From Oopsacas minuta (taxonomy: Eukaryota > Animalia > Porifera): a DNA stretch of 64,000 bases. The stretch's first letter is position 1, and each line of letters starts with the position of its first letter. A program made the position numbers and the translations under genes. This document shows, piece after piece, positions 1 to 53,964 of the stretch. The stretch spans positions 186,001 through 250,000 of the forward strand of contig JAKMXF010000343.1 of assembly GCA_024704765.1 (NCBI GenBank), written 5' to 3'. Below the pieces are notes generated by a model. The model saw only the letters and a program-made list of their open reading frames with translations, had not been told where the DNA came from and did not search any database.

Positions 1-598
1 AAGATTCAAAACTATCGTATGAGTATTTATTAAATGTATTCTCTTAATATTTTTGGCCTTAAAGTTGGGCTGATTAATGGCTAATGTATTATATTATCAA
101 ACAGATACAGTAGACTCCGTTCACTTCTGGATCAGGCAGGCCATTTTGACCCGATTTCTTATAGCTATTTACATTTTTTAGCCACTATACAGGAATTATG
201 GAAAATATTCGGTATTTGTTGGCTATTGTTGGCTATTATATGCAGGAATAGGAAAATATTTATGTTATTTTCATTTAAAATTAGAAATCCAGGGAATAGG
301 TCGGTGAGTATGAATTTGATACTATTTGTATGGTGTTTCTGGCCTTCAAAAGTTGTACAATAATTACCTGTGTATTAATTCCAAGAAGTAAATGCACTAA
401 AATCCAGTCAACTTCAGTTATATCTAACACAGATATACTGAAATACCCGTTTATATGTAAGTCTGAAATTGTGCTAATATCGAGGTAATTATCGCGTTTC
501 TTGAATAACAGAAGTTGACTGTATTTCAATATTCCTGAAGCCGGTGTGTATCAATATTGCATGTACTATATACACTATTTGTTTGGTATTTAGATAGT

Positions 599-3500
599 AT
601 GGATATTACTAGTGTTACAAATGATGCAGTATCTAGTAATGATAAAGTTTTGAAAGATGAAACAAAGAGGTAACAATTTAATTCTTATGATTATTTACTG
701 AAAATATATTTAGCATATGGTGGAACCTGCATTACCCACACCTGTATAATCCGTTAGACCTCTATAATCTCGCTTCTTACCTGTATGTGACAGCTATTAT
801 TCGAGTTAATCTTGCGTGTACGCTTTCATATCCAATAATTACCATATATGGTAGTGTCTTCCTATCAGCAAAAGCAATTCCAAATTTTTCACGTACATTG
901 AGTGCATTTTGGTATTTTTAAATAGTCGCATAATAGCAAATTCGCGTATTAGCAAATACGAATTGCTAATAGGCGAACATCACTGCAATATGTATGTATA
1001 TTCAATAGGAAATCAGCTACTAAGCTTCAAATACAGAATTACTTCATAATGCTGACGCAAGGCTGTGGTGATCATCTATGTACCAACTCAAATTGCGTTA
1101 CAGCTAATCCTGATAGCAAGCTCTCTCCTAACGAGGCAGCAATTAAGTCTATTACCCTTTTCAAAGCAAAATCTCCTCTCTGTCAGAAGTATAAGACAGC
1201 TGGGAGAGTTCGAGCTGGTGGCCTTAAGAATAGAGTTAACCATCCAAGAGTGTAAGATTATAACTTTTAAATAACTACAGTAGAACTCACATAAGACCCG
1301 ATGGGAAACATAAATGAGTGCGAGTTGAGAATATGTTTCGAGTAAAGTTCATATTAATTAGCCGAGTTCTGCTGTATATAGATTTTCATATTGATACCAT
1401 TTCTTGTGTATGAATTCCAACATATAATTGATTAGAAATATTATTCATTTCTGTTTTAGAATGCAAGAAACTCCCATTGATATGGAGATTGATGGACGTT
1501 CTACTAATTCACTTCCTACTAATTCTACTGCTAGTCAGAATGATCCATTTGTAAGTAACACCTTTAAGAAATTTGCTAACTGGGCCACTCAACCCCCTTT
1601 TATTGAACACAGATTTGTCGAAATACCCGAATAATTCGATTGTACAAATATAGTCCCAAAACCTTCAAAATAATATATATTTTATCGGTCATATCGAAGG
1701 AATTTTCCTGGTCCCTTGAGCTTCGATTATTGTATAATAATATAATATCAACAGTAACATACAAATAAATAATTAGAAACATTGCAATGAATAGTTAGAA
1801 TTATCAGATAGAACAAAAATAATTCCTAATTTAGAGATATCAATACCACATGGATAGATGAACTCTCCTTTCTTCTTTCCCTCACGTCCTATGGAGTGAA
1901 TAAGTTTTCCTGATTGTGTGAATATCTTGATACAGTGGTTATTAGTATCGCTTATGATAATATTACTAGCTAGGTCTAAACAGAAGAATCGTGGAAGACA
2001 TAGCAAACAATTTTGTTCCTCTCCTTGAGAGATACAAGAGCTGAGATAGTCTCCATTTCTAGAAAATAAATGCACACATCTAGGACTCAAGTCTAGCACC
2101 ACTACACAATCTTGAGTAAGCTTAACATCTTGAGGACAGTCCAGCTGTTTAGTACCTAAGTTTGATTTGAATTGTAGACGTGTAGAGAAGATGGAAACTC
2201 TGTGCTTGTGCCTATTCGCTATAAACACATCTCCATTTGTGTCTATACATAATCCTTTAGGTGATGCTAACTTTTCTTCTTCTTCACTGTCTGAGTTATC
2301 AGTTCTGTTCAGAAGATAAAGTTTGTTCTTACAAAACTTGAACAGAGAGTTATGTATCATGTCAGTTATGAAGATAAATTCTTTATTCACAACTATTCCG
2401 TATGGTTCCTTCAGGATATCTTGACCGAAATTTGTAAGGAATTCTCCCTCAAATGACATAACTTGTACTCGATTATTCCCGAAATCAGCTATGTATATTC
2501 TATGATCATCTTCATCAAGGAATAAACCAATAGCATTAAGTTCATTCTTATCCTTTCCTATCTTACCAGTTGTTAGAATAGGTACTTTCTTCAGTGAATA
2601 GTCTGGTACCTCCCACTCTTTGACCTCTCCGAATTCTGAGATAGCTGATTGAATTGTTTGTAGTGTGGGACATAGGAAGAGAAGATATGGGAGTTTTGTA
2701 GGAGCTTCCAGATCCTGGAGACCTTGTTGATACACCATAGTAGCTTGGTTATGTACTGGAATGTTTTTATTTACTTTCAAACTCATTTCTTCCAATTGTT
2801 TTCTAGTTTTATCTAGCTCTTGAATTGCTGCCTTGCGAGTAGTCTCCTTGGTAGTGTAGTCCTCTCTGAGCTGAGAAAGTTGGTGCAGGAGAGCATCCCT
2901 CCTCTCGATCAGCAAGGTAATGAGAGGATTGAATGTCTGTAGAATTTCTGAAGCGACAGCATCGAATTGTGCCATCTTGTCGATTTGAATATTCGTGGGC
3001 TCATTAGTCGCCATTTTAGTGATTAGTAGTTAGTTCGATTTATTTGAATGTAAAGATTTAGTTAATTCTGACTCTATTTATATTTGTTTAACTTGAGCAT
3101 ACCATAATACCTCATTGGTTGTTATCGAAAGTGTTTAGAACGTAAGAGATATCTCGCGGTAATTAAATATTCAGGATATGATGATAGCGTTTCGTAGGAA
3201 GTGGTTTGGTGGTTTTCCACAATTTCTGATTTGAATTTTAATATTAATTATACAAGCTTGCAAGCTCTAAGATGTCTCTCATATACAGTCGAAATCTTTT
3301 TTTCTGCCAGGTTTTTGCTACTATTCTTGTGCATTGTGTGTGTCAAAAATACTCAATTTGGACTATATTCGTAGTACATGTATTCATTGATGCAACTAGG
3401 GTGATTTTGGGTCGGCATATGCCCACCCTGGAATTTTAGGGCTCACCCAGATTTGACTACACCGCAGTGGCCTCGTGCTATATGTGCCTGGGGCCTGGCC

Positions 3501-6500
3501 CCCCAAATATTCTCAGAGCTCCCACATCATTGCTCCAAGGGACCAGAAAAATGTTAACAATCTGGGCTTATTGCAAATCAATGGTTATTTCTTGCGAATT
3601 GTCAGTATTCCTTGCGGTCCTTGACCTTTCTGACTGTTTCCAGCGCCCATAGACCCTCATTCAGAACTTGTTGCACACTAGATTGAATTTGTGCCTCCCA
3701 GATTTCAAAGCAACACGACGCCACTGCTCCACCGTAATACAAAAAGTATATGGCGGGTGGACATGACGTCATCTTTGCCCCACCCTAACTTATGAGCCTA
3801 GTTCCGCCAATGAATGTATTTGTTAAAGTACTAAATGTTGTGAAGTAATCTAACCAAAATCCCCCCAACATGATGAAAATAGAATCACGCGTTTTGCTAG
3901 GTGAAGAAACAGGTAAGATTTGTTTTGAGTATACTCACACGGGAATTTACAATATTATTAATTACTAATTACATTGGGTTCTGTGAAGTAATATACTTGT
4001 TTCTCTTCCTCTTCTGTCCCGAAATTTGTGCCCCCTCTGGAAAGATTTTTTTGTATTTTTACAGATATAATTGGAGTATCTTTATTATGACCAAAATATT
4101 TGGTCCCATAGAGGTTCAGAATAAGCAACCGTGACTGCAATTAATTCTGGAAATTTCAATTTTTCAGGTAGCTACTAACTCAGTGACAAGGCGTAGAGTT
4201 GGAAGATGGGACTCAGTAGATAGGACAGAGGGCAGTGAAGGAGAGGGATATGACGTTCCCCTTGAGAACCTGTATGATTATGAGTACTTTGATGAATCTC
4301 CGCCAGCAGAAGATCAGATAGATTATATATCATCTACTGGTTAGTTGATAGCACCATTTGTTATGTGCTAAATGTTTATCCTTATAAGGACAATCGACTG
4401 GCCTTTGTTCGATAGCAGTTTAAACTAATTATCCGAAAAATATTTACGTGACAGTATAATTTGGAAAAGACTTACCTCTTCGCCTTCAGAAAACAAAAAT
4501 TAGTACGTACTGTTATTCGTAGGTCCGTCAGATCCTGGTGGAGCAGAGAACCGTTCGGATTCAGACAGAGACAGTGAGGGAACTGCTAACGGAGTAAGTA
4601 CAGAGAGTAGCAGTACAGATTTAGTAATTCCTCCCTCAATACTGAGAGATCTGATCACTGGTCTGTCTACAGAGCCTGAGCATAGAGGTCGTAGGAATAA
4701 GAGAGCAGTCAGGAAGAGAGATAAAGAATACAGATTATTAACTCTGGGTAAGTAATATAGTACTGAATTATAACGTGAACGTACATACATAGTTCACATT
4801 ATAATTACTTACGAACCTCGTGAATATGAATTTCTGGATAAGAAGTACAATTACTTGCGAAAATACAGTTCGTATTACTCCCGTTAGTAGTAACTCCAGA
4901 TTAAGCGAACACATTTGACCGTAGTTGGTGTTTGTATTATTGAGGTTCCACTGTATGTATTTTGACAGATCAGATAGCAGAGCTCCCGTTTATCAATGAA
5001 GAAAAGCTATCAACTCTACTGGCTGCAGAGAGCTCAATACCTGAACCTGAATCAGATGAAACTACACCCACAAATTCCCACCCTTCAGATAGAAATAAAG
5101 ATCTAATTTCTCTATTAACAAACGTATTTTCTAGCCCTTATGCTTTGTCAAAGAGTTTCCTTATTCAGAAGGCCAATACATCAATGGATATATCTACAAA
5201 TAATACTAATGCTAAGCATAAGATTACTCCAGAAATAGCAGTAGATGTTGTATCAGTGTGTAAGGTCAGTACTGTTTGCTCTGCGTTTAAAAGATTTTTT
5301 CAATTTTTGAAAATACAAAATATTTTGAGGAAATTATCCGAATTTTTGCATTGTTAAGTGTGGCTAATTTCCGTCAGTGACACATTTGTCCTTACTTTTC
5401 ACTATGAATTAAATACACGTACTACTTTGCTTTAGTTAATATACTATAAAACATGAATAGCTATGTCTTTAGTGGCGAAAATGAATAATCATTCGCTATA
5501 ACCGTTCAAAATATGCTATTCCATTTTCGAAGTTCTATATTACCATTGAAATATATGTATGCTACTTTGATGGTTGGGATCATATTTGTACAATTCCAGG
5601 CTTCGAGATATCCGTGTTTGACATAATGAGAGTTGACTGTATATTTATCATGTAGTCATACGCCCTACTGGAATCCCTTGGGGATGAACAGATTGAAAAA
5701 TGTCTCTCCAACTCAATCCATAAGATGGGAAAGGAATTATACAGAATTAATAGGGAACTTTCTAGAAGCAGTAGAGGTTCTATGTCTCTACCTTTCCATC
5801 TTTTAAACGTATACGTCATTATAATGGAATGCCCTTTCCTTGCTACGCCCAGATTTATTCATCACGGGTTCCCTTATCTCTGTCAAGCTATTGCCACACT
5901 GGGATCACGTGATCAGGAAGATTTAGTTGTTTGGTTCTCTAAATATTCGAAAGAAAATTTATTGAGAATTGTTCAGGGCTTCCAACAGGTAAATTGTATT
6001 TATATAAACGGAGTGTCGTGAATTTATTTCTGGTATTTGTATCAAGTCCATATACGTATTTTCCCGATACTTTAGAGGATTTCTTACTGCTAGAGGCTGT
6101 TCTAAGCAGCGCCGAAAATCATACATTTATAGGGCGTAAGGAGTTATCGCATCCACCAGGTTCCTTCAAAATTTAGCTCAATTTCCATAGCAACTTTGCG
6201 ATAATCATGGTTATCTCCATATGAATATCCTTGGGATTAGCAAAATATGTTCTCATAGCTGGTATACATTACATCTTGATTCATTTCCTTTTCTTTTTTG
6301 AAGTGAAAACACACCTTGGTAAATATATATTCTCTGTTCATTTCAGTTAATTACCTACCGTATTCTCGAATTGGACTCAGATGAATATTTCGAAGTGCAG
6401 AGTGATGACGTCATACCAGTAGCAGTGAAATCTCTGAGACTATTCTACCTAGCTAGTCTATTGTATTCAAAGAACCATGGATTCATAAGACCCTATAACA

Positions 6501-44300: not shown

Positions 44301-47300
44301 CCTTCACAAAAGGGGCCTGTGGAAACGAGGAAATTGGCAGAAACGGAGGAGCATTTTTCGGCGTGCCTGACACCCCGATTCTGGAGGTTACACTGTATAG
44401 ATGCGTGGAAAGTTCACCTTGAATTGTTTCACTTCCCTTTGATCAGCTGTTGTGAAAATACTAGTTTATCTAACTTCATATAAACGTGTAAATCCAACAG
44501 TTAAATACTCCCTTTTAGATTCAACGCCATATATGGTATCTATTCAATATATGGATAATATTTGGGGGAAATTCCTAACTACTTGTTAGGAATTTCCAAA
44601 AAAAGACATACAGTGAACTTCCGTTATACCGAACACGGATATTTCGAAATACCCGTTTATATAGAAGTCTGGAATTGTACAAATATAGTCCAAAACCGTC
44701 AAAGTAACATATATTCCATCGGGTATATCGAAGTAATTATCATGGTCGCTTGAGCTTCGATAATAACAGGAGTTGACTATACATACAGTGCATATGATTA
44801 TCTGTCTTATATAACTAGATAATCCTGTATACATGTGTAGGAATTAATAATTATAAATATTCTGCTTTCTAGATGAGCCCGTTATCTTGAGTATATCATG
44901 TGAAGTAAAAGGGATGTCAGTTACATTCTCACACAACCAACAACCTCTATCTCCACAGCCAAATGGATTACCCCTTGATTTTGGCACTGTTACTATTAAT
45001 AGCAAGAATATTCTGGAATTTATTGTGACCAATAATACCGATATTTCTGCTCCAATAAAATTATGGGTGGATAAGTTTCCAGCTGATGAATCAGCTGGTC
45101 AAATTGCTAGAGGATATAAAAGGCCTGGTCAGGAATTTGATGTTTATTTGGGAGAAGATACACTCAAGAAGAGGTTAGAGTTTGATGAAAAGAGGTAAGA
45201 TTTTGTATATATTAAGACCAAATATCCTCTAACTGTAATGTCCATACTACCGCTAAGGATCTCAAAATGTGGTAAATTAGTAAAGGGGTCGACGGGTGAA
45301 AAAGGTCCCCTGACTCCCATAATTAATAATCAATTTCAAATACTGATAAAGTTCGCAAGAGTAACAACTAAAATATAATTCTAGAAAAAGAAACAATTTC
45401 TAAAGAGGATCAATTCAGTGTACTAAATACACAATCTAATATCTGTGTAGGGGTTGGGGATCTAGAGGGATGGACGGACTGGATCGATTAATATTTTCAA
45501 AATCAGCGTATTATCTTTATTGTATTTCTCATCCAAGAGAATGTCAAAAGGAATATTTGTAATCTCCGATCTATAGCCATTATTTGTTATTTGAAATTTG
45601 TCTATCGTGAAAGTCCATGAATCTTCTGCATTTATTTGGTTTATCAGAATGAGTGTACATTTCCCTGTGAGAGGCCATTGTACGTATTGAACACACTCTC
45701 CGATGTTATAGGATTGTAACACTAAGTCCGCATTTGGTATCTTTTGGATTGTCAACTGTGGGTAAAGATAATAGAAAGAATGAACTACAAACCTTGGACC
45801 CTGTACATTTGTACCATTCCAATTAGAGTAATTCGCATCTCCCCCGTAATTTGCGGTATAGGGATTTACCTTACCTGCTATTGCTATTTCTGGTTGACCT
45901 CTTAAATTGTATATTTTGTTGACGATGGCGTGTCGATCTTTAATTGTCCAGATAATTCCATTTACCTTTAGATAATCCTTAATTTGAATGAACTCGTTTA
46001 ATGCAGATTCTAGTTTTTCTATTTTTATTGTCTGTTGACGTTTCTCCTCCTCCAATCTCTCCACTTTATCTGCCATAAACACGCTTACAACTTCTGTATG
46101 ATATTCCTTCGCTTCCTTTCTATGATTCTCTAGCTCTCCTCTCTTCAATTCTTTCTTACACCCGTATTTAATATACGGACACTGCAATATAAACTGGTCA
46201 CACTCTTCAAGGTGCTGTACTAAGCCCCCCAATGTACCCTCCCATTCACAACCTCGCTCTGACAATGCGCATTTACAACTTATCTTGGCTATCATTGATC
46301 GAATTGACCCTACAAGTTGATGGTTTGTTTCCTTACCCACACAACTTTCACATACTTGAGCTAGTCCCCCCTTTATGCTACAAGTATTATGCATTATACC
46401 CTCGCACACAGAACACACTACAAGGCTCTCTTCTAGCGACGATAAATTCTGTATCACCAGCTCCATTTTATAACCTCCCCGTTTGAAACATGTCCCTGCT
46501 GTAGTAATGTATATAAGATCCTCTATCTTGTCTAACTGTGATCTCTTCTCAGCCATTTGTCTTAGTTTGCTAGATTATATTAGAAATAACTATTATATCG
46601 TGTTGACTATTGAGTGCATATACAACTTGTGTAATAAGGTATACAGTAGAACTCAGATGGGACATACTTCTTCGGGAAAAGAACATTTACGTATTATCCG
46701 AGTGTACGTCTTATCGGAATGGTAGAAAATTTTTGATTGAAAGAAGTACAGTGAAACCTCCACAAACGGGGAACTTCTGGAAAGTAGCGAACTCATATTC
46801 CCAGACAAATGAACTTCCGCAAAATGGGAAACAGGGTAGCAATTTTCGGAGTCCCTGGCACTAAATTTTAGCTGAGTGTACGTCCATCCCGAGTTCTCGT
46901 GTAGTATGATGGACATTTCTGCAACTCATCATATAAATCATAAAATGTACTTTGTTACACATATTTGTGGAATGGTAAATAACTTTAGGCAACACGTATC
47001 ATGACATCATGTTGTTACAACACTGTTGCACAAGATCAAGATCAAGTTATATTTCTATGCAAAGTGTTGCAGAGTGCTCGACAAAATAAAATTTGATGGT
47101 GGTTATTACCCACCATTTGGAATTTTTAAACTAAGGTCATGCATGAAGGTAATTATTTTGGTGGTTTAATTAAGCCATCAGATTATAGGCTCAGGATTTG
47201 GGTGGCTAATATATAATTTTGTAATAATCAGAAGCTTCGAGTATCTCGGAGGTTAACCAAATCAGGAGGCCACCAGCCCTGGCATTTCACGAACAATCGC

Positions 47301-50300
47301 CCTAGTCCGAATTTATGTTACAACGTATATAATCAGATAAATAGTGTATTCATTAGTTAACTATTTGATACTCTAATCAGCGATTAAAAGGTTATAACAC
47401 TTATAACAGGCTTCTTGTTCGAAATATGTAGTCGTGTAATGCTGAATAGGCTATCATTCACATTTAAATGCACTATACGAATATGTATATGCTTAGCATG
47501 CAATTGTATATCGTTGTTTCAATAGTTTGCAACAAGTCTCCCTGTACAGAACTAAATTTGTTCTTTGAGATTACTGAGCGAATAATGCTGTACACTAATA
47601 TAATTTCCTTATAGTATGATTCCTTGCATATTTACATATGTCCTGTAAGATAAATTCTGTTAGAATGTTAAACTCTGCGTGTACCTTCATTCAGGAATAT
47701 TATAATAGTCTATACTCACAATGACTTAACTATTGATGGTTATGTAACATACCCAAACTGATTGATATAATCCTATTTCATTGAGTGATTACAATGTGTA
47801 GGTCGCCATACATCTGGTGTAATATGTACTTGGTTAGGCGATAATTGTTATAAATCAACTTAGTTTTTCCATATCACTTTTCTCTAGTATAAAAAGGGAA
47901 GGTAATAGTGTTATAGTCTCTAAACCTTTGTTTTTATCATGACGAGTGAAAAACAGAATTCAAAGGAAGTATACGAATTCACTCGGTATCAAAGTGTCGA
48001 AAACGGATCAGTTATCAGAAAGGCCCCGAAAAGAGAAGAAACGAATCATACCCCTCACATTAAAAACTTCCTTAAAACACATGGTTTTCGGTATTTGAAT
48101 TTGCTGAGATTAATATTCAGTGTAACCTGTTGTATCCTATATATCCTTCAAACAATGGACCTACCTGATAGGAATTACTTATATCCTCCTCGTTGTTGTG
48201 GTATTGCAGAACACACGACACAGCCGTGTAGAAATGACAGCTATAAACTGGGTACGATCGGTTGGGCTATGAGGAATTCGGGCTGTCTTCATGTAAACAA
48301 TATTTATATAATAAACAAGGATGGGCAATCACATTATGCAATGTCTAGGGCTAATAAAGGAAAATTATCTGAGCCAATAGCATCTCAACAGTGCAGGAGG
48401 TATTGTAATATCGGAGACCCCGGATGTAGCAATGACGTAATCGATACATGTCGTTGCTCTATCGAATGCGGTGATACTCTATACTGTGGTAAAGTGCAGT
48501 GTGAGAGTTGGCACTACATGAAACTGATCTTCTATGAGAAAACTCTATGGTTGTATATACTCCAGGTATTGTTCTCATTACTGACAATGTTCTCTGCAAT
48601 TATACAAGCATTCAGTGCTCATTTTATACGTAGAGTTAGAACATTTAACTTAATCGAGCCCAATTTATTTTTCGACTGCCTAAACGGTATTTTAGCTCTT
48701 GCCAGCCTTGCGTACGCCCCATGTCTTAAAGATTTATACATTCCATTATTCCTGGAGTGTTTCACAGCTAGGATGATCCTAAAGCAGTTATTATACAGCA
48801 TTGACTTGAATAACATTTCCAGTAAATTCCTTACCCCAGTCATACAGAAAACTTTAGCTGCGCTACTTGGGCTAGCCGCAATACTATTCTCATTCACATG
48901 TGTAGTGCATTATTTCGAGAGAGTTGGCTGTCCGGGCGATTCGCATGTTACAACGTTATTCGACAGTATTTGGTTCATTATTGTAACCATAACAACCGTG
49001 GGGTATGGTGACAAAAGCCCTAGTACACCCCTTGGGAAGCTCTCAGTAATTTTCCTAATCCTCATAATCCTATTTTTTCTACCAAAAACGCTTGCAAGCA
49101 TTTTAGAATTGATAAATAATTCGAAACAAGATTATCAATCCTATCATTGTCGTACTCCAAAGAGACACGTTTTGCTATGTGTATGTAAACTCGACCTGAC
49201 GTTGATTGCAGATTTCTTAAACGAATTCTACTCGCAAGAAGAGAATATTTGGTTCAATACAGTTGTGCTTACAGCCGAGCATGTCCCTCCAGCTGTTAAT
49301 ATTCTACTCAAAAGCCCTGCTTGGAGAAATAAAGTCCTTGTTATAATTGGCTCAGCTCTGAAAGAGAGAGACTTAGAACGAGCTAATATACGTTTAGCAA
49401 AAGCTTGTTTCTTACTGCCTGATCGTATTACAGATGACGCACGTATGTCTGACCACGAGACAATGCTTCGTGCCTCCTTCATACAAAACTATGCTCCACA
49501 TATTGATTTGTATGTACACATATTTATGGCGGAAAATAGAATGAATGTGAATTTCGCGAAACAAGTTTTATGTGAAGGAAGATTGAAGCAAGCGTTGATG
49601 GCGAATAACTGCATTTACCCGGGGCTTTCGTCTCTGTTAACTATCTTAATGCATACTACTAGCTCAGCTAAATGTGGTAACTACAAAGATCATTCACAGT
49701 TATATAATTCTTGCTCTGCAATGGAAGTATACGCAATTATACTCAAGGATAGTTTGTTATTCCGAGCCCTAGCCGGTCGAACATTCCTTTGCGCCTCTAT
49801 ATTTATACAGAGAACAACGGAAGTATTAGTAATCGCGGTCAAACCTGCAGACACGGATCAGATCCTCCTGAATCCGGGGAGAAGACATACACTCTCCGGT
49901 GAAGATACTATTTACTACGTAGCAACGGAGAAAGAGGAAAATATTTACAAAAGCAACCATATAAGTAATGAGGATTTGCAACTTAATATGGAATTGATAA
50001 TGCGTCCGAGTAGTGTTAAATGTAGAGATTCTCACTATCCTATTGGGATAATGGAAATATTGGATAAGTCGTGTACTCCTTTATGTCCCTCTTTAAACTC
50101 ACATCCTTTGAATATCGCGACAATTGACAGCACAGCTTCATTATTCACGGCAAGCTCTACTCCGGATATAGAATTGGCACCTCGAGCTTGCAAATTTCGC
50201 ATGAACTCTGAGACTGAGTCACCACTCAAAAACGAAGCGAAAAATGTGAACCAAAAACCAAGCGCATTTACCCGCCAGGTCAGTAAGATTTTAGATAACA

Positions 50301-52086
50301 CGAAACAAACTTCACAAATTAAAGTCCTTAACACAAGCGGTGAAGAAGATATCAACTGTTTCACGGATTTATTGAATAAACAAGAATCAGAACTGACATA
50401 TATTTCATTGAATCCCCGTCCAACTTACTTCTGGGTTAAGGAAACAGTCCGTCATATTTGTAAAGAACCTCCTAGCTTATGCTGTCTCCAAGCCGGTTGG
50501 AAGGTAATCTGTCATGAAGAAACCGTTCCAGTGACTTCTATCCAGCAGCCGGACGAAATGGTGGACCGTGCGCTTTTTCTCACCGGGTATGAACGTCCGT
50601 TAATTGTATGCGCTAGTGAATCCGGCTCACAGCTATACGAATTTCTATTACCCCTCAGAGCTTATCATATCCCTACAGAAGAGTTAATACCAATCGTACT
50701 GTTATTACCTAGCATTCCTGATACCGCATTCCTCGAGGCTATATCCAGTATCCCGTTTATAAAGTTTATCGTAGGCCGGCCGGAGTCTGTGGATGATTTG
50801 TTAATAGCCGGGGCGCTGGACGCAACGGGGGTTATATTATGCCTCGGAGATGGAGTGCCGGAGATTAAGGCGGAGGCACATATGTCAGATGCGAGTCTTA
50901 TCAGTACAGCACAGAATATTTCACAGATTTTTGTTAATACGAAGATATACGTCGAATTGACTGAGATATGGAGTATGCGATATTTGAAATTAGAAAATGG
51001 ACGTATGTCTTACACATCTAGCAAGGAAAAGAATTCCAATTGGACTAAACCTGTCGCTAGAGGAGCGATGGATTTCATACACGCACCGTATTTCGTGTCG
51101 AGCCAGGCGTTCGCCCCATCCCTCCTAGATACACTGCTATACCAGTGTTTACAGAAAGATTATATTCTTGAATTAGTGCATTTGTTCCTAGGATTACGTC
51201 AGACCCCGGGATCCGGATATATCGGGAAAGTTTCCGTCACAGAATCTGATATACAGAATTTCGACACGTACGGGGAATTAATACTAGATTTAGCAGTTAA
51301 TAATGACCAGCTAGCACTAGCTATATACAGAACGATAGAAGTAAAGTGTGAAAATGAAGATACAGAAGTTAATCAATTCTCAGCTCCCAATTTGTTTCTA
51401 CAAAGAAGAGCAATTTGTCTTGGATTAGCCAACGACGTATTTGCCTTGAATAGTGCCAAGAATGTTGAAAATTGTCATATATTAGTTAATCCACCAGCAG
51501 ACACCCCATTGATGTCAAGAGATATTATCCTAGTGATAAATACTTGCTCAACGGAGCAATACAAGATAATACATCGATCTTATTCCGAGATAAGACGAAG
51601 TTCTATGTATCCAATTTCTGAGTGCTCGTCAATAGCTGATAGTTTTTCCCCAGAAATTACCGACCAATCTTTTAAATTTATTAATAATTCACTACATAAT
51701 CGTAATTCGTCTAGACCAAAAAACGGCCCCAAAAATCGCCCCCAGCGACCAAAATAAATCAAAAATTACGGGGCATTGATGGATCTTCTCCAAATTCGAC
51801 GAAAGGACATAAATATGTGAAAAGAACTCCCAAAAATAAACTGTTACAGAAAAGGACAAGTGGGTCTGATGTTATTTTATGAGTGAAATAGAAAATTGAG
51901 TTGGAAACTGTGCCAGATTCTGAGCAGATTGACTCTTGAATTGTATTTTAATAACTTTAGTATAATTGTTATTTATATTTGTACTGCCCCTATTAATTAT
52001 TTGTATCTGAGACTTATTTTATGGCAATTTTTAGTGCAGCTCCTATACGGAGATGTCATAATAGCATGGATGATGTGCGATACGCC

Positions 52087-52133
<47 letters not shown>

Positions 52134-53964
52134 CTAACAGCCCGATTAAGTGAATTCTTCGTTTAGGGTAATCAATTGCCTCATCCCCCGTATTTTATAA
52201 ATACTCTACATACCTGCCAACTCCCGTTATATCGAAGCTCAAAGTAGCGCGATAGTTTTTCGATATAAGAGGAGTCAATATAACCAAGACAAAATATGTT
52301 ACTTTGTGGCCAAATCTGTACATTTCAGGTAAGCAGGTATTTCCATATATACGTGTTTGATATAACGGGAATTGACAGTTTATCGGAATGTACTTATGAA
52401 TATTTTTTCTATTTATAGTATCTGGAAGGCCTATTTATCAACAGGACAAGGAGTATGTTTCCTCGCCCAATCAAATAGCCATACCATCTCTCCACACTCA
52501 TCTACAACGATATCACTCATAGCATTCTCTAACATGTGGGGAGAATACACTGATACTCTATACTGTAAAATTGATGGAATAGAACAAACTTTTTGTTTCG
52601 ATTTCAGAATTAATGTTATCGGTTCTCCGATTAAATTCCACTCCATGCCATCCGGTCAACAACCAATTATTCGTTTTGGCAGTCACCTTTTCGAAAAAGC
52701 TCGAGTCACAAGAAAGATACGTCTCAATAACTCATCACCATGTGATATACGTATAGATTGGCGCGTTTACACACAGATTTCTGACCAATTAGATCACGAT
52801 GTGGTTGATATAGAATTGACTTATGGTAACCCTCTCCCTTCACATTTGCATACAGTAACTTTTTCCGATCAAAATGTATTAGAATCTGATTTAATACAAC
52901 TTTTCGTAAATCCACATGATTCTATCCTTTCTACAGACACTTACACTATAGAACCTGCACAATGTGTTGTCCCTAGAGATGGTAATATCACTTTGGAATT
53001 TATATTCTTTCCTACTCCTGAGAATTTAGCTAAGTTCGGTGAGAATATTAATGGACATGCTCTTGGTTATTTAAGTTTAGATTATCCCCCGGTTCATCTA
53101 GGAAATATTATTAGACCCCAAGGGAAATTTGTCGAACCGTTGAGGATCGATTTTAATGCCGGAATAATTCATCCTAAACTCGAAATAATGCCGGTTAATT
53201 CCCAACTTGAAGAGGAAATTTTAGGATTCGCATTTCCAGCCTCAAAATTAATAAAAATGAATTCACTTGGACAGTTTCAACCTTTCAAATCTTATCAAAC
53301 ATTTCAAGAAATAACAATACAAAATCCAACCAAACAGAAATTGAATTTTGATATTATTTTGCCTTCTCAATTAAACATCGCTGATCTTTCACAAATCCCA
53401 ATAGATACTCTTACAAATCTTTATATTTTAAAACCGAATCAACTTGTAACTTTAACAATAAACTTCGCAATAGAAACGAAACAAATGACTTCATCGTTCG
53501 TAAATGAACAAACAGATTGGGCCATCCAAACCAAGAAAGAACGCAGATACTTAACTTACAAACAAAACATACAAATTGAATTTCCCTCACAACTAACTCA
53601 GCATTTGCCAGTAGAAGCTCGTATTGAATTGCCACTATTAAAAGTGTCAACTGATGCGATAAATTTCGGTTCGATAGATATAGGAGAAGTATTTAGTCAA
53701 CAATTTTGTGTTTACAATTACGCAAGTAAGTGTTACTCAAAATGGAAGGCAGCTATTCGCCCGGACAATTCAATTCTTACTCTTGATTCGGACCATGGAA
53801 TTTTACGTGGATTTGATGAGGGATACGATTACAGTGCTATAACTCTTCTAATTTCGTTCTCACCTTTGGAAGAGAAGGACTATGAGTTTGAAGTAGTTAT
53901 CACTGGTGAATTTCTTGAAATTCCTTTGTATTTGAAAGTACAAGGGAGTGGTAGATACAGGTAA
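41317..53964 (+). CDS. DLEC1: DLEC1/CFAP81 ciliary ASH/Ig-like repeat protein, 5 exons
   Basis: Exons 41317-41564 (RPSS..SQDIAHIL), 41694-41948, 42050-44280, 44873-45194 (LDFGTV), 52419-53964 (SNMWGEYTD..LNNSSPCDIRIDW); all four junctions are phase-compatible GT-AG. Confidence 0.88.
45462..46556 (-). CDS. TRAF-like protein (degenerate RING, TRAF zinc fingers, coiled coil, MATH domain), nested in DLEC1 intron
   Basis: CSVC..CESC RING remnant, CALSERGCEWEGTL..HLEEC, CPYIKYGC..LENH, coiled coil, GIIWTI..GPRF..QWPLTGKCTLILINQ MATH-like region; intronless. Confidence 0.85.
   Translation of the reverse strand: MAEKRSQLDKIEDLIYITTAGTCFKRGGYKMELVIQNLSSLEESLVVCSVCEGIMHNTCSIKGGLAQVCESCVGKETNHQLVGSIRSMIAKISCKCALSERGCEWEGTLGGLVQHLEECDQFILQCPYIKYGCKKELKRGELENHRKEAKEYHTEVVSVFMADKVERLEEEKRQQTIKIEKLESALNEFIQIKDYLKVNGIIWTIKDRHAIVNKIYNLRGQPEIAIAGKVNPYTANYGGDANYSNWNGTNVQGPRFVVHSFYYLYPQLTIQKIPNADLVLQSYNIGECVQYVQWPLTGKCTLILINQINAEDSWTFTIDKFQITNNGYRSEITNIPFDILLDEKYNKDNTLILKILIDPVRPSL
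47939..51757 (+). CDS. KCNT: Slo2/KCNT-type potassium channel, intronless, nested on the same strand in DLEC1 intron
   Basis: 1272 aa; pore DSIWFIIVTITTVGYGDKSP; RCK1 RHVLLCV..DFLNEFY..GSALKERDLERA..DHETMLRA; RCK2 LLPLRAYH..FLEAI..LLDTLLYQ; uncharged S4 as in Slo2. Confidence 0.92.
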   Translation: MTSEKQNSKEVYEFTRYQSVENGSVIRKAPKREETNHTPHIKNFLKTHGFRYLNLLRLIFSVTCCILYILQTMDLPDRNYLYPPRCCGIAEHTTQPCRNDSYKLGTIGWAMRNSGCLHVNNIYIINKDGQSHYAMSRANKGKLSEPIASQQCRRYCNIGDPGCSNDVIDTCRCSIECGDTLYCGKVQCESWHYMKLIFYEKTLWLYILQVLFSLLTMFSAIIQAFSAHFIRRVRTFNLIEPNLFFDCLNGILALASLAYAPCLKDLYIPLFLECFTARMILKQLLYSIDLNNISSKFLTPVIQKTLAALLGLAAILFSFTCVVHYFERVGCPGDSHVTTLFDSIWFIIVTITTVGYGDKSPSTPLGKLSVIFLILIILFFLPKTLASILELINNSKQDYQSYHCRTPKRHVLLCVCKLDLTLIADFLNEFYSQEENIWFNTVVLTAEHVPPAVNILLKSPAWRNKVLVIIGSALKERDLERANIRLAKACFLLPDRITDDARMSDHETMLRASFIQNYAPHIDLYVHIFMAENRMNVNFAKQVLCEGRLKQALMANNCIYPGLSSLLTILMHTTSSAKCGNYKDHSQLYNSCSAMEVYAIILKDSLLFRALAGRTFLCASIFIQRTTEVLVIAVKPADTDQILLNPGRRHTLSGEDTIYYVATEKEENIYKSNHISNEDLQLNMELIMRPSSVKCRDSHYPIGIMEILDKSCTPLCPSLNSHPLNIATIDSTASLFTASSTPDIELAPRACKFRMNSETESPLKNEAKNVNQKPSAFTRQVSKILDNTKQTSQIKVLNTSGEEDINCFTDLLNKQESELTYISLNPRPTYFWVKETVRHICKEPPSLCCLQAGWKVICHEETVPVTSIQQPDEMVDRALFLTGYERPLIVCASESGSQLYEFLLPLRAYHIPTEELIPIVLLLPSIPDTAFLEAISSIPFIKFIVGRPESVDDLLIAGALDATGVILCLGDGVPEIKAEAHMSDASLISTAQNISQIFVNTKIYVELTEIWSMRYLKLENGRMSYTSSKEKNSNWTKPVARGAMDFIHAPYFVSSQAFAPSLLDTLLYQCLQKDYILELVHLFLGLRQTPGSGYIGKVSVTESDIQNFDTYGELILDLAVNNDQLALAIYRTIEVKCENEDTEVNQFSAPNLFLQRRAICLGLANDVFALNSAKNVENCHILVNPPADTPLMSRDIILVINTCSTEQYKIIHRSYSEIRRSSMYPISECSSIADSFSPEITDQSFKFINNSLHNRNSSRPKNGPKNRPQRPK
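52090..52127. repeat. (TA)n microsatellite
   Basis: Pure TA run in the DLEC1 intron. Confidence 0.95.

Follow-up and report, generated by a model that had tools for sequence, protein, structure and literature searches.

The window analysed here, by which we mean the whole stretch of 64,000 nucleotides from contig JAKMXF010000343.1 of the glass sponge Oopsacas minuta (GenBank assembly GCA_024704765.1, positions 186,001 to 250,000 of the forward strand), carries a gene for a K+ channel of the Slo2/KCNT type in which a large cysteine-rich insert separates the first two transmembrane helices. The gene, identified from the listing of open reading frames (ORFs), from Pfam and from a sequence search of PDB chains, is one unbroken ORF at 47939-51757 on the plus strand, the strand of all channel features given below; it has a single exon and encodes 1272 amino acids (aa) plus a stop codon. 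The S1 helix (48086-48154, aa 50-72) was placed by hydropathy, by an AlphaFold2 helix at aa 46-74 and by alignment to S1 of bilaterian Slo2 channels, and the S2 helix (48542-48628, aa 202-230) by hydropathy and an AlphaFold2 helix at aa 203-231. Between them lies the insert (48155-48538, aa 73-200), which has 12 cysteines among its 128 residues, together with a single N-x-S/T sequon (N99), and was characterised by cysteine count, conservation and AlphaFold2. Codon reading and a table of cysteines located two further outward-facing cysteines, both encoded by TGT: Cys262 in the extracellular S3-S4 turn (48722-48724, motif A-P-C-L-K) and Cys331 in the turret between S5 and the pore helix (48929-48931, motif V-G-C-P). 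The K+ selectivity filter T-V-G-Y-G-D (48995-49012, aa 353-358), recognised from the sequence and the Ion_trans_2 match, lies between S5 and S6. Downstream of it are the RCK1 region (49160-49840, aa 408-634), defined by Pfam matches to Slo-like_RCK (aa 408-526) and BK_channel_a (aa 541-634) together with the alignment to KCNT1, and the RCK2 region (50585-51337, aa 883-1133), defined by the second KCNT1 stretch and the second Slo-like_RCK stretch.

The assignment to Slo2 is supported by domain content, by sequence and by predicted structure. Specifically, Pfam returned Slo-like_RCK (E 3.6e-37, in two stretches), BK_channel_a (E 4e-15) and Ion_trans_2 (E 5e-14), and the top matches among PDB chains were human and chicken KCNT1/Slo2.2 (E 6.8e-117 for 8hir, and 2.8e-115) as compared with E 8e-29 for the best Slo1 chain; both RCK regions aligned to KCNT1, with 260.8 and 132.7 bits, respectively. 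An AlphaFold model of aa 45-400, with a predicted local distance difference test score (pLDDT) of 76, superimposed on chicken Slo2.2 (5u76) with Z 22.4 and a root-mean-square deviation of 2.2 Å over 220 residues, followed by Drosophila Slo1 with Z 15.6, and Foldseek gave the same top matches over ~210 columns. The protein has no S0, the ~49 residues ahead of S1 being devoid of an extra hydrophobic segment, and its S4 stretch (aa 264-285), in which K264, R278 and K282 are the only basic residues, aligns to the charge-poor S4 of KCNT1. In a tree from a quick search, with support from the Shimodaira-Hasegawa-like approximate likelihood ratio test (SH-aLRT), the sponge group is sister to bilaterian Slo2 with a support of 100. 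We conclude that the encoded protein is a bona fide Slo2/KCNT K+ channel, in which each feature of the family that could be tested was found. A preliminary description of this DNA, made from its letters alone, had named the same family and had quoted strings for S1 and S2 that hydropathy and the two AlphaFold2 helices bear out. Because the KCNT1 alignment starts only at aa 192, just ahead of S2, the insert is without a KCNT1 counterpart, and the ~130 residues of the aa 45-400 model that correspond to this loop are unmatched in the superposition on Slo2.2.

The cysteines of the insert are residues 86, 87, 97, 116, 152, 156, 163, 171, 173, 177, 183 and 188, and the number and the coordinates given in the preliminary description were exact. 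The whole protein contains 45 cysteines, 12 of them in the 128-aa insert and 33 in the other 1144 aa (2.9%); the binomial probability of at least 12 cysteines in a segment of this length is 3.6e-4, and all other segments of 128 aa have six at most. In comparison with the closest ortholog (P0002), an intronless gene at a syntenic locus (L002) of another glass sponge, the loop is of equal length, has no indels and keeps 12 of 12 cysteines. The proportion of nonsynonymous differences (pN) in the loop is 0.28 and that of synonymous differences (pS) is 0.90, that is, synonymous sites are saturated; pN elsewhere is 0.10-0.17 in the transmembrane and RCK parts and 0.25 in the linker between the RCK domains, and identity to the ortholog is 54% in the loop and 75-83% in the transmembrane and RCK parts. 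These substitution patterns indicate that the insert is under purifying selection. Moreover, the loop is retained in a Trinity transcript of the ortholog in Vazella pourtalesii and in a transcript-like 3.7-kb Logan contig from SRR2064712 (P0016), and contigs from four public runs are colinear across the insert without a joint. We conclude that the insert is genuine coding sequence rather than an intron; splicing out of the loop, which would have undone the preliminary description, does not occur in the mRNA of the Vazella pourtalesii ortholog. Based on homology to the topology of Slo2.2 with its cytosolic N-terminus, the insert is extracellular, as had been proposed. In 28 proteins of the family, N-x-S/T sequons are ~4.5-fold denser in the loops than elsewhere (2.41 against 0.54 per 100 aa), which provides independent support for this location.

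The insert is not an oddity of a single gene; it is a trait of a whole channel family, in which a known channel type, Slo2, has a probably new S1-S2 domain. A word-index protein search returned 15 relatives, of which the named ones were 'Potassium channel subfamily member 1' of Oopsacas minuta and the Trinity transcript of Vazella pourtalesii, both species being members of the Hexactinellida; these relatives bear out the suggestion of the preliminary description that the host might be a glass sponge. In a 15-sequence alignment of the loops, seven of the 12 cysteine columns are invariant and the other five are kept in 13-14 of the 15 sequences, and this degree of conservation argues that the cysteine pattern is not due to chance. 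Insert length and cysteines are kept in ~20 glass-sponge relatives, including the Vazella transcript and the Oopsacas minuta proteins. The SH-aLRT tree contains clades A (with the gene at 47939-51757), B and C, with P0015 and the long-branch P0016 outside; a search with P0016 added two more glass-sponge clades, D, which includes P0016 and Oopsacas LOD99_4255, and E, which includes Oopsacas 'isoform X21'. In clades D and E, the loop is homologous and comprises 134-147 residues and nine cysteines; over all five glass-sponge Slo2 clades, the homologous loop has 123-147 residues and 9-12 cysteines. The Oopsacas minuta proteins that carry the automatic NCBI names 'Potassium channel subfamily member 1' and LOD99_4255 (P0007, P0047 and P0052) belong to the same family and have the same kind of loop, but, falling into clades C, D and E, they are paralogs of the clade-A gene and not its ortholog. 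As judged from its phylogenetic distribution, the insert is the defining mark of Slo2 in glass sponges and arose before the duplications from which the at least five clades derive.

Beyond glass sponges, the comparison covered bilaterians only. In the Slo2 proteins of six bilaterian lineages (eel, bryozoan, bivalve, chiton, snail and aphid), the S1-S2 loop has ~35-55 residues and few cysteines; that of the eel protein annotated as KCNT2 has ~35 residues with two cysteines and a GCWGC motif, while a fish KCNT2 row in the same alignment is N-terminally truncated and uninformative for the loop. The claim of the preliminary description that the loop is far longer than in vertebrate KCNT channels thus holds; a match in Slo2 channels of other invertebrates, which would have spoken against that description, was not found among the bilaterians compared. 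Vertebrate Slo2.2/KCNT1 (Slack) and Slo2.1/KCNT2 (Slick) (5u70/5u76, 8hir) share with the sponge channel the six-transmembrane core without S0, the TVGYGD filter, the two RCK domains and the charge-poor S4. They differ in their S1-S2 loop, with ~35 residues and two cysteines (eel) against 128 residues and 12 cysteines, and in that both the S3-S4 turn and the turret are free of cysteines, unlike in the sponge channel with Cys262 and Cys331. Slo2 channels are activated by intracellular Na+ in vertebrates and by Cl-/Ca2+ in the nematode.

Modelled by AlphaFold with a 15-row alignment, the loop alone (pLDDT 72, predicted template modelling score 0.68) is predicted to have an ordered alpha/beta core that spans loop residues 30-115 and is made up of about six strands and two short helices, and these secondary-structure elements recur in the S1-S6 context model (aa 45-400). 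The models thus favour a folded over a disordered insert, as the preliminary description had supposed, and its failure to recognise the domain is matched by our searches. Pfam yielded nothing for the gene's own loop and nothing relevant, at E up to 10, for the set of 15 aligned loops, the families looked for without a match in these loops including WSC (PF01822), lectin and EGF domains; neither WSC nor PAN structures were among the fold-search matches listed. A search of PDB sequences with the single loop gave nothing, and a profile of the loop had 0 matches among all PDB chains at E up to 10. With the loop model, the best Foldseek match in the PDB had E 0.066 and a template modelling (TM) score of 0.25, the TM score in the ESM Atlas was at most 0.34, and the best Z from VIA was 3.0, both against 48,161 representative chains and in a second look at the Foldseek list; a protein-atlas feature search gave only unnamed clusters with low recognition. 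Searched against 1.84 billion cluster representatives, the loop profile found two clusters only, both from this channel family. Because a local control showed that the profile misses clades D and E at the 1.84-billion database size, this blank excludes close copies of the domain elsewhere but not very divergent ones. Together with the predicted core, these results suggest that the insert is probably a new small disulfide-rich domain, and it may have a new fold.

The preliminary description had taken the even number of cysteines as a sign of a disulfide-bonded domain. Cysteines were tabulated in all outward-facing segments of 28 sponge and seven bilaterian sequences. Cys262 is invariant in 28 of 28 glass-sponge sequences and occurs in none of the seven bilaterian Slo2 proteins. 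Cys331 is confined to clades A-C, the same clades that have loop Cys97, and both are absent in clades D and E. Within the loop, clade D and P0015 have each, by separate events, lost both Cys156 and Cys163, and clade E has lost Cys87 along with Cys188. The outer face accordingly has 14 cysteines in clades A-C (12 in the loop, Cys262 and Cys331), 12 in P0012 of clade B (ten in the loop, Cys262 and Cys331), and 10 in clade D and likewise in clade E (in each, nine in the loop and Cys262, with Cys331 missing). Hence, the total is even in every group, whereas the loops of clades D and E taken alone have an odd number. The argument from parity is therefore incomplete: for the loops of clades D and E, an even number is reached only with Cys262, and this points to a domain that would be stapled onto the channel body rather than being free-standing. 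The simplest reading of these counts is that every outward-facing cysteine would be paired.

We regard it as highly probable that in this glass-sponge Slo2 channel the extracellular S1-S2 linker has expanded from a short loop into an alpha/beta domain of 128 residues that is ordered, rich in cysteines and glycosylatable. On this anatomy we base a working hypothesis for its function. In this model, the domain would be a built-in extracellular cap that is locked by about five internal disulfides. The sponge-specific Cys262 in the outer S3-S4 turn would form a disulfide with one loop cysteine in all clades; in clades A-C, including the gene at 47939-51757, Cys331 in the turret would form one with a second loop cysteine, for which Cys97 is the most likely candidate. 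The cap would then fix the S1-S4 bundle, which does not sense voltage, to the pore and could shape or shield the outer vestibule, and it might thereby tune stability, gating or pharmacology. This mechanism, which relies on cysteine patterns, is put forward tentatively, its chances in our judgement falling somewhat short of even; for the anatomy and the stapled cap taken together, we see the chances as balanced.

The suggested role of the cap may be likened to that of the loops of BK beta subunits and of the S1-S2 domains of polycystins and mucolipins. The beta1-beta4 subunits of BK (Slo1) have two transmembrane helices and an extracellular loop of ~120 residues with four disulfides, and form a crown over the pore (6v22). 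They share with the sponge insert the layout of helix, loop and helix and a disulfide-rich extracellular domain of similar size on a channel of the Slo family, and this layout supports the analogy of a built-in auxiliary subunit; they differ in being separate subunits, whereas the flanking helices in the sponge channel are its own S1 and S2. The PDB profile search (E up to 10) gave no match to BK beta (KCNMB) loops, and no beta subunit was among the structural matches listed. Polycystin (PKD2) and mucolipin (TRPML), which are tetrameric six-transmembrane cation channels, have large folded S1-S2 insertions, the TOP domain and the luminal domain, respectively; these form a cap over the pore and affect both assembly and gating. 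They occupy the same S1-S2 site on the same face and are likewise glycosylated and disulfide-containing, but belong to the TRP branch and have ~200 residues compared with 128 in the sponge K+ channel. They were absent from the 50 listed matches of the loop model or the transmembrane-domain model, which is a weak negative because only representative chains were searched; the top 50 structural matches of the transmembrane-domain model were K+, HCN and CNG channels, aligned through their helices only.

Several observations weigh against the stapled cap or the evidence on which it is built. The first ~28 residues of the loop, with Cys86, Cys87 and Cys97, have a pLDDT of only ~45-52. The co-occurrence of cysteines comes from few independent events, one each for 97/331 and 87/188 and two for 156/163. 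In P0012, the loss of Cys156 goes with that of Cys183 and is a poor fit to a simple 156-163 pair, and in clades A-C Cys262 and Cys331 could bond each other instead. The comparison with auxiliary domains is one of position only, because the fold searches found nothing among the matches listed that would link the insert to BK beta loops or to the TOP and luminal domains of PKD2 and TRPML. Finally, the five public runs that contain the locus are stored as contigs and their kind is not on record; for this reason, they were not counted as RNA evidence.

With these points in mind, we considered three other explanations of the insert. The least probable by far, and one that we regard as effectively refuted, is that the stretch is artefactual and reflects misassembly, an intron retained in frame or a piece of a pseudogene. 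The gene is intronless and lies in AT-rich DNA, and its RNA support comes from the Vazella ortholog, that is, from another species, all of which would suit such an explanation; against it, 384 nucleotides run without a stop codon, the ortholog has the same length and the 12 cysteines at saturated synonymous sites, and the stretch recurs in the Vazella transcript and in 27 other family members from several genomes, so that conservation, pN/pS, the transcript and the colinear contigs from four runs all speak for coding sequence.

The other two explanations accept the domain and differ in what it would do. As a receptor module, which corresponds to the sensor suggested in the preliminary description, it would bind a ligand, a glycan, matrix or a silica-associated component, or sense flow, and signal to the gate. 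An ordered, surface-exposed, disulfide-rich domain that was kept throughout the history of the family would be in line with this idea, as would the faster evolution of the loop noted above and the variation of its length and cysteine pattern between clades, as if paralogs recognised different partners. We nevertheless consider a receptor module unlikely: the searches of Pfam with 15 loops, of the PDB with the loop profile (0 matches) and of known folds (best Z 3.0) gave no similarity to known binding domains, and, unlike typical modular binding domains, this one was found only in Slo2 channels in the search of 1.84 billion representatives. Alternatively, the domain might have no role in gating and serve folding, quality control in the endoplasmic reticulum, stability at the surface or resistance to proteases in sea water on a syncytial membrane. 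Dense N-glycosylation sequons and cysteines would be expected under this explanation, and it is also consistent with cysteine positions that are strictly kept in sequence that is otherwise only moderately conserved. This possibility, too, seems to us a minor one because the domain is lacking from the bilaterian Slo2 channels compared, among them those of marine molluscs and a bryozoan, and because the sponge-specific cysteines of the S3-S4 turn and the turret would imply an intimate coupling to the gating machinery.

Among sponges, the conduction of action potentials is, to our knowledge, confined to glass sponges. According to its genome paper, Oopsacas has no Kv or Nav genes, its K+ channels not being of voltage-gated types (PMC10280926). 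The paper describes the channel that restores the membrane potential after a Ca2+-based action potential as unknown, although repolarisation is sensitive to a K+ channel blocker (PMC10280926). Slo2 and its loop are not mentioned in the genome paper (PMC10280926), and a literature search did not find a description of sponge Slo2 channels or of an S1-S2 loop domain. At least five Slo2-type clades with a lineage-restricted extracellular domain constitute a candidate set for the repolarising K+ current, and the genes, being intronless, are directly clonable; the expansion of Slo2 is notable given the reported absence of Kv genes. If borne out, this would make the glass-sponge channels the first in the Slo family whose pore subunit brings its own large, folded extracellular domain. 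This domain occupies the place taken in BK by the beta subunit, a separate protein, and in the TRP channels polycystin and mucolipin by their caps. In its most far-reaching form, the hypothesis would combine a repolarising K+ conductance from the expanded Slo2 family with a new-fold domain that is disulfide-linked to the S3-S4 turn and the turret, giving a covalent clamp between voltage-sensor domain and pore that could serve as an auxiliary subunit built into the channel or as a gate that responds to redox state or to a ligand; we think it improbable that all of these elements apply at once. We know of no other six-transmembrane K+ channel with such an outer clamp between voltage-sensor domain and pore.

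Upstream of the channel gene, a TATA-like element (TATAAAAAGGGA) is present at 47888-47899, ~40-50 bp ahead of the start codon at 47939, and its position so near the start codon fits a very short 5' untranslated region. A TRAF-type zinc-finger gene (45462-46556, minus strand, 364 aa, zf-TRAF E 1e-4) lies head-to-head with the channel gene, and a long open frame with HYDIN/CFAP65-like Ig domains follows downstream (52372-53964, plus strand). The ortholog at L002 is likewise flanked by TRAF-like genes upstream on the minus strand and by a CFAP65-like gene downstream on the plus strand, the latter frame being kept at 10615-12057 of L002; three to four TRAF-like genes stand in tandem at 1-4853 of that locus. 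The neighbourhood is conserved, and the copy number of the TRAF-like genes may differ between species. Members of different clades were found on one contig in four cases (P0005/P0011, P0012/P0013, P0014/P0015 and P0002/P0022), which suggests linked duplicates.

Downstream of the insert, contigs from the public runs break or run into unlike sequence at 48986-49035, which codes for the filter, and at 50596-50766, which codes for conserved RCK2 sequence. Splicing was considered for the joints at 49035/50596 and further downstream and was rejected, the contigs stemming from paralogs with identical 31-mers. One run (X5) contains a closely related second organism, organism B, whose copies over 48500-51900 are mostly 95-99% alike. 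Towards the C-terminal end of the ORF, these copies have an in-frame deletion of 3 nucleotides at 51367 and, after 51717, one inserted A; a sister taxon thus keeps the channel gene, although its extreme C-terminus may differ there.

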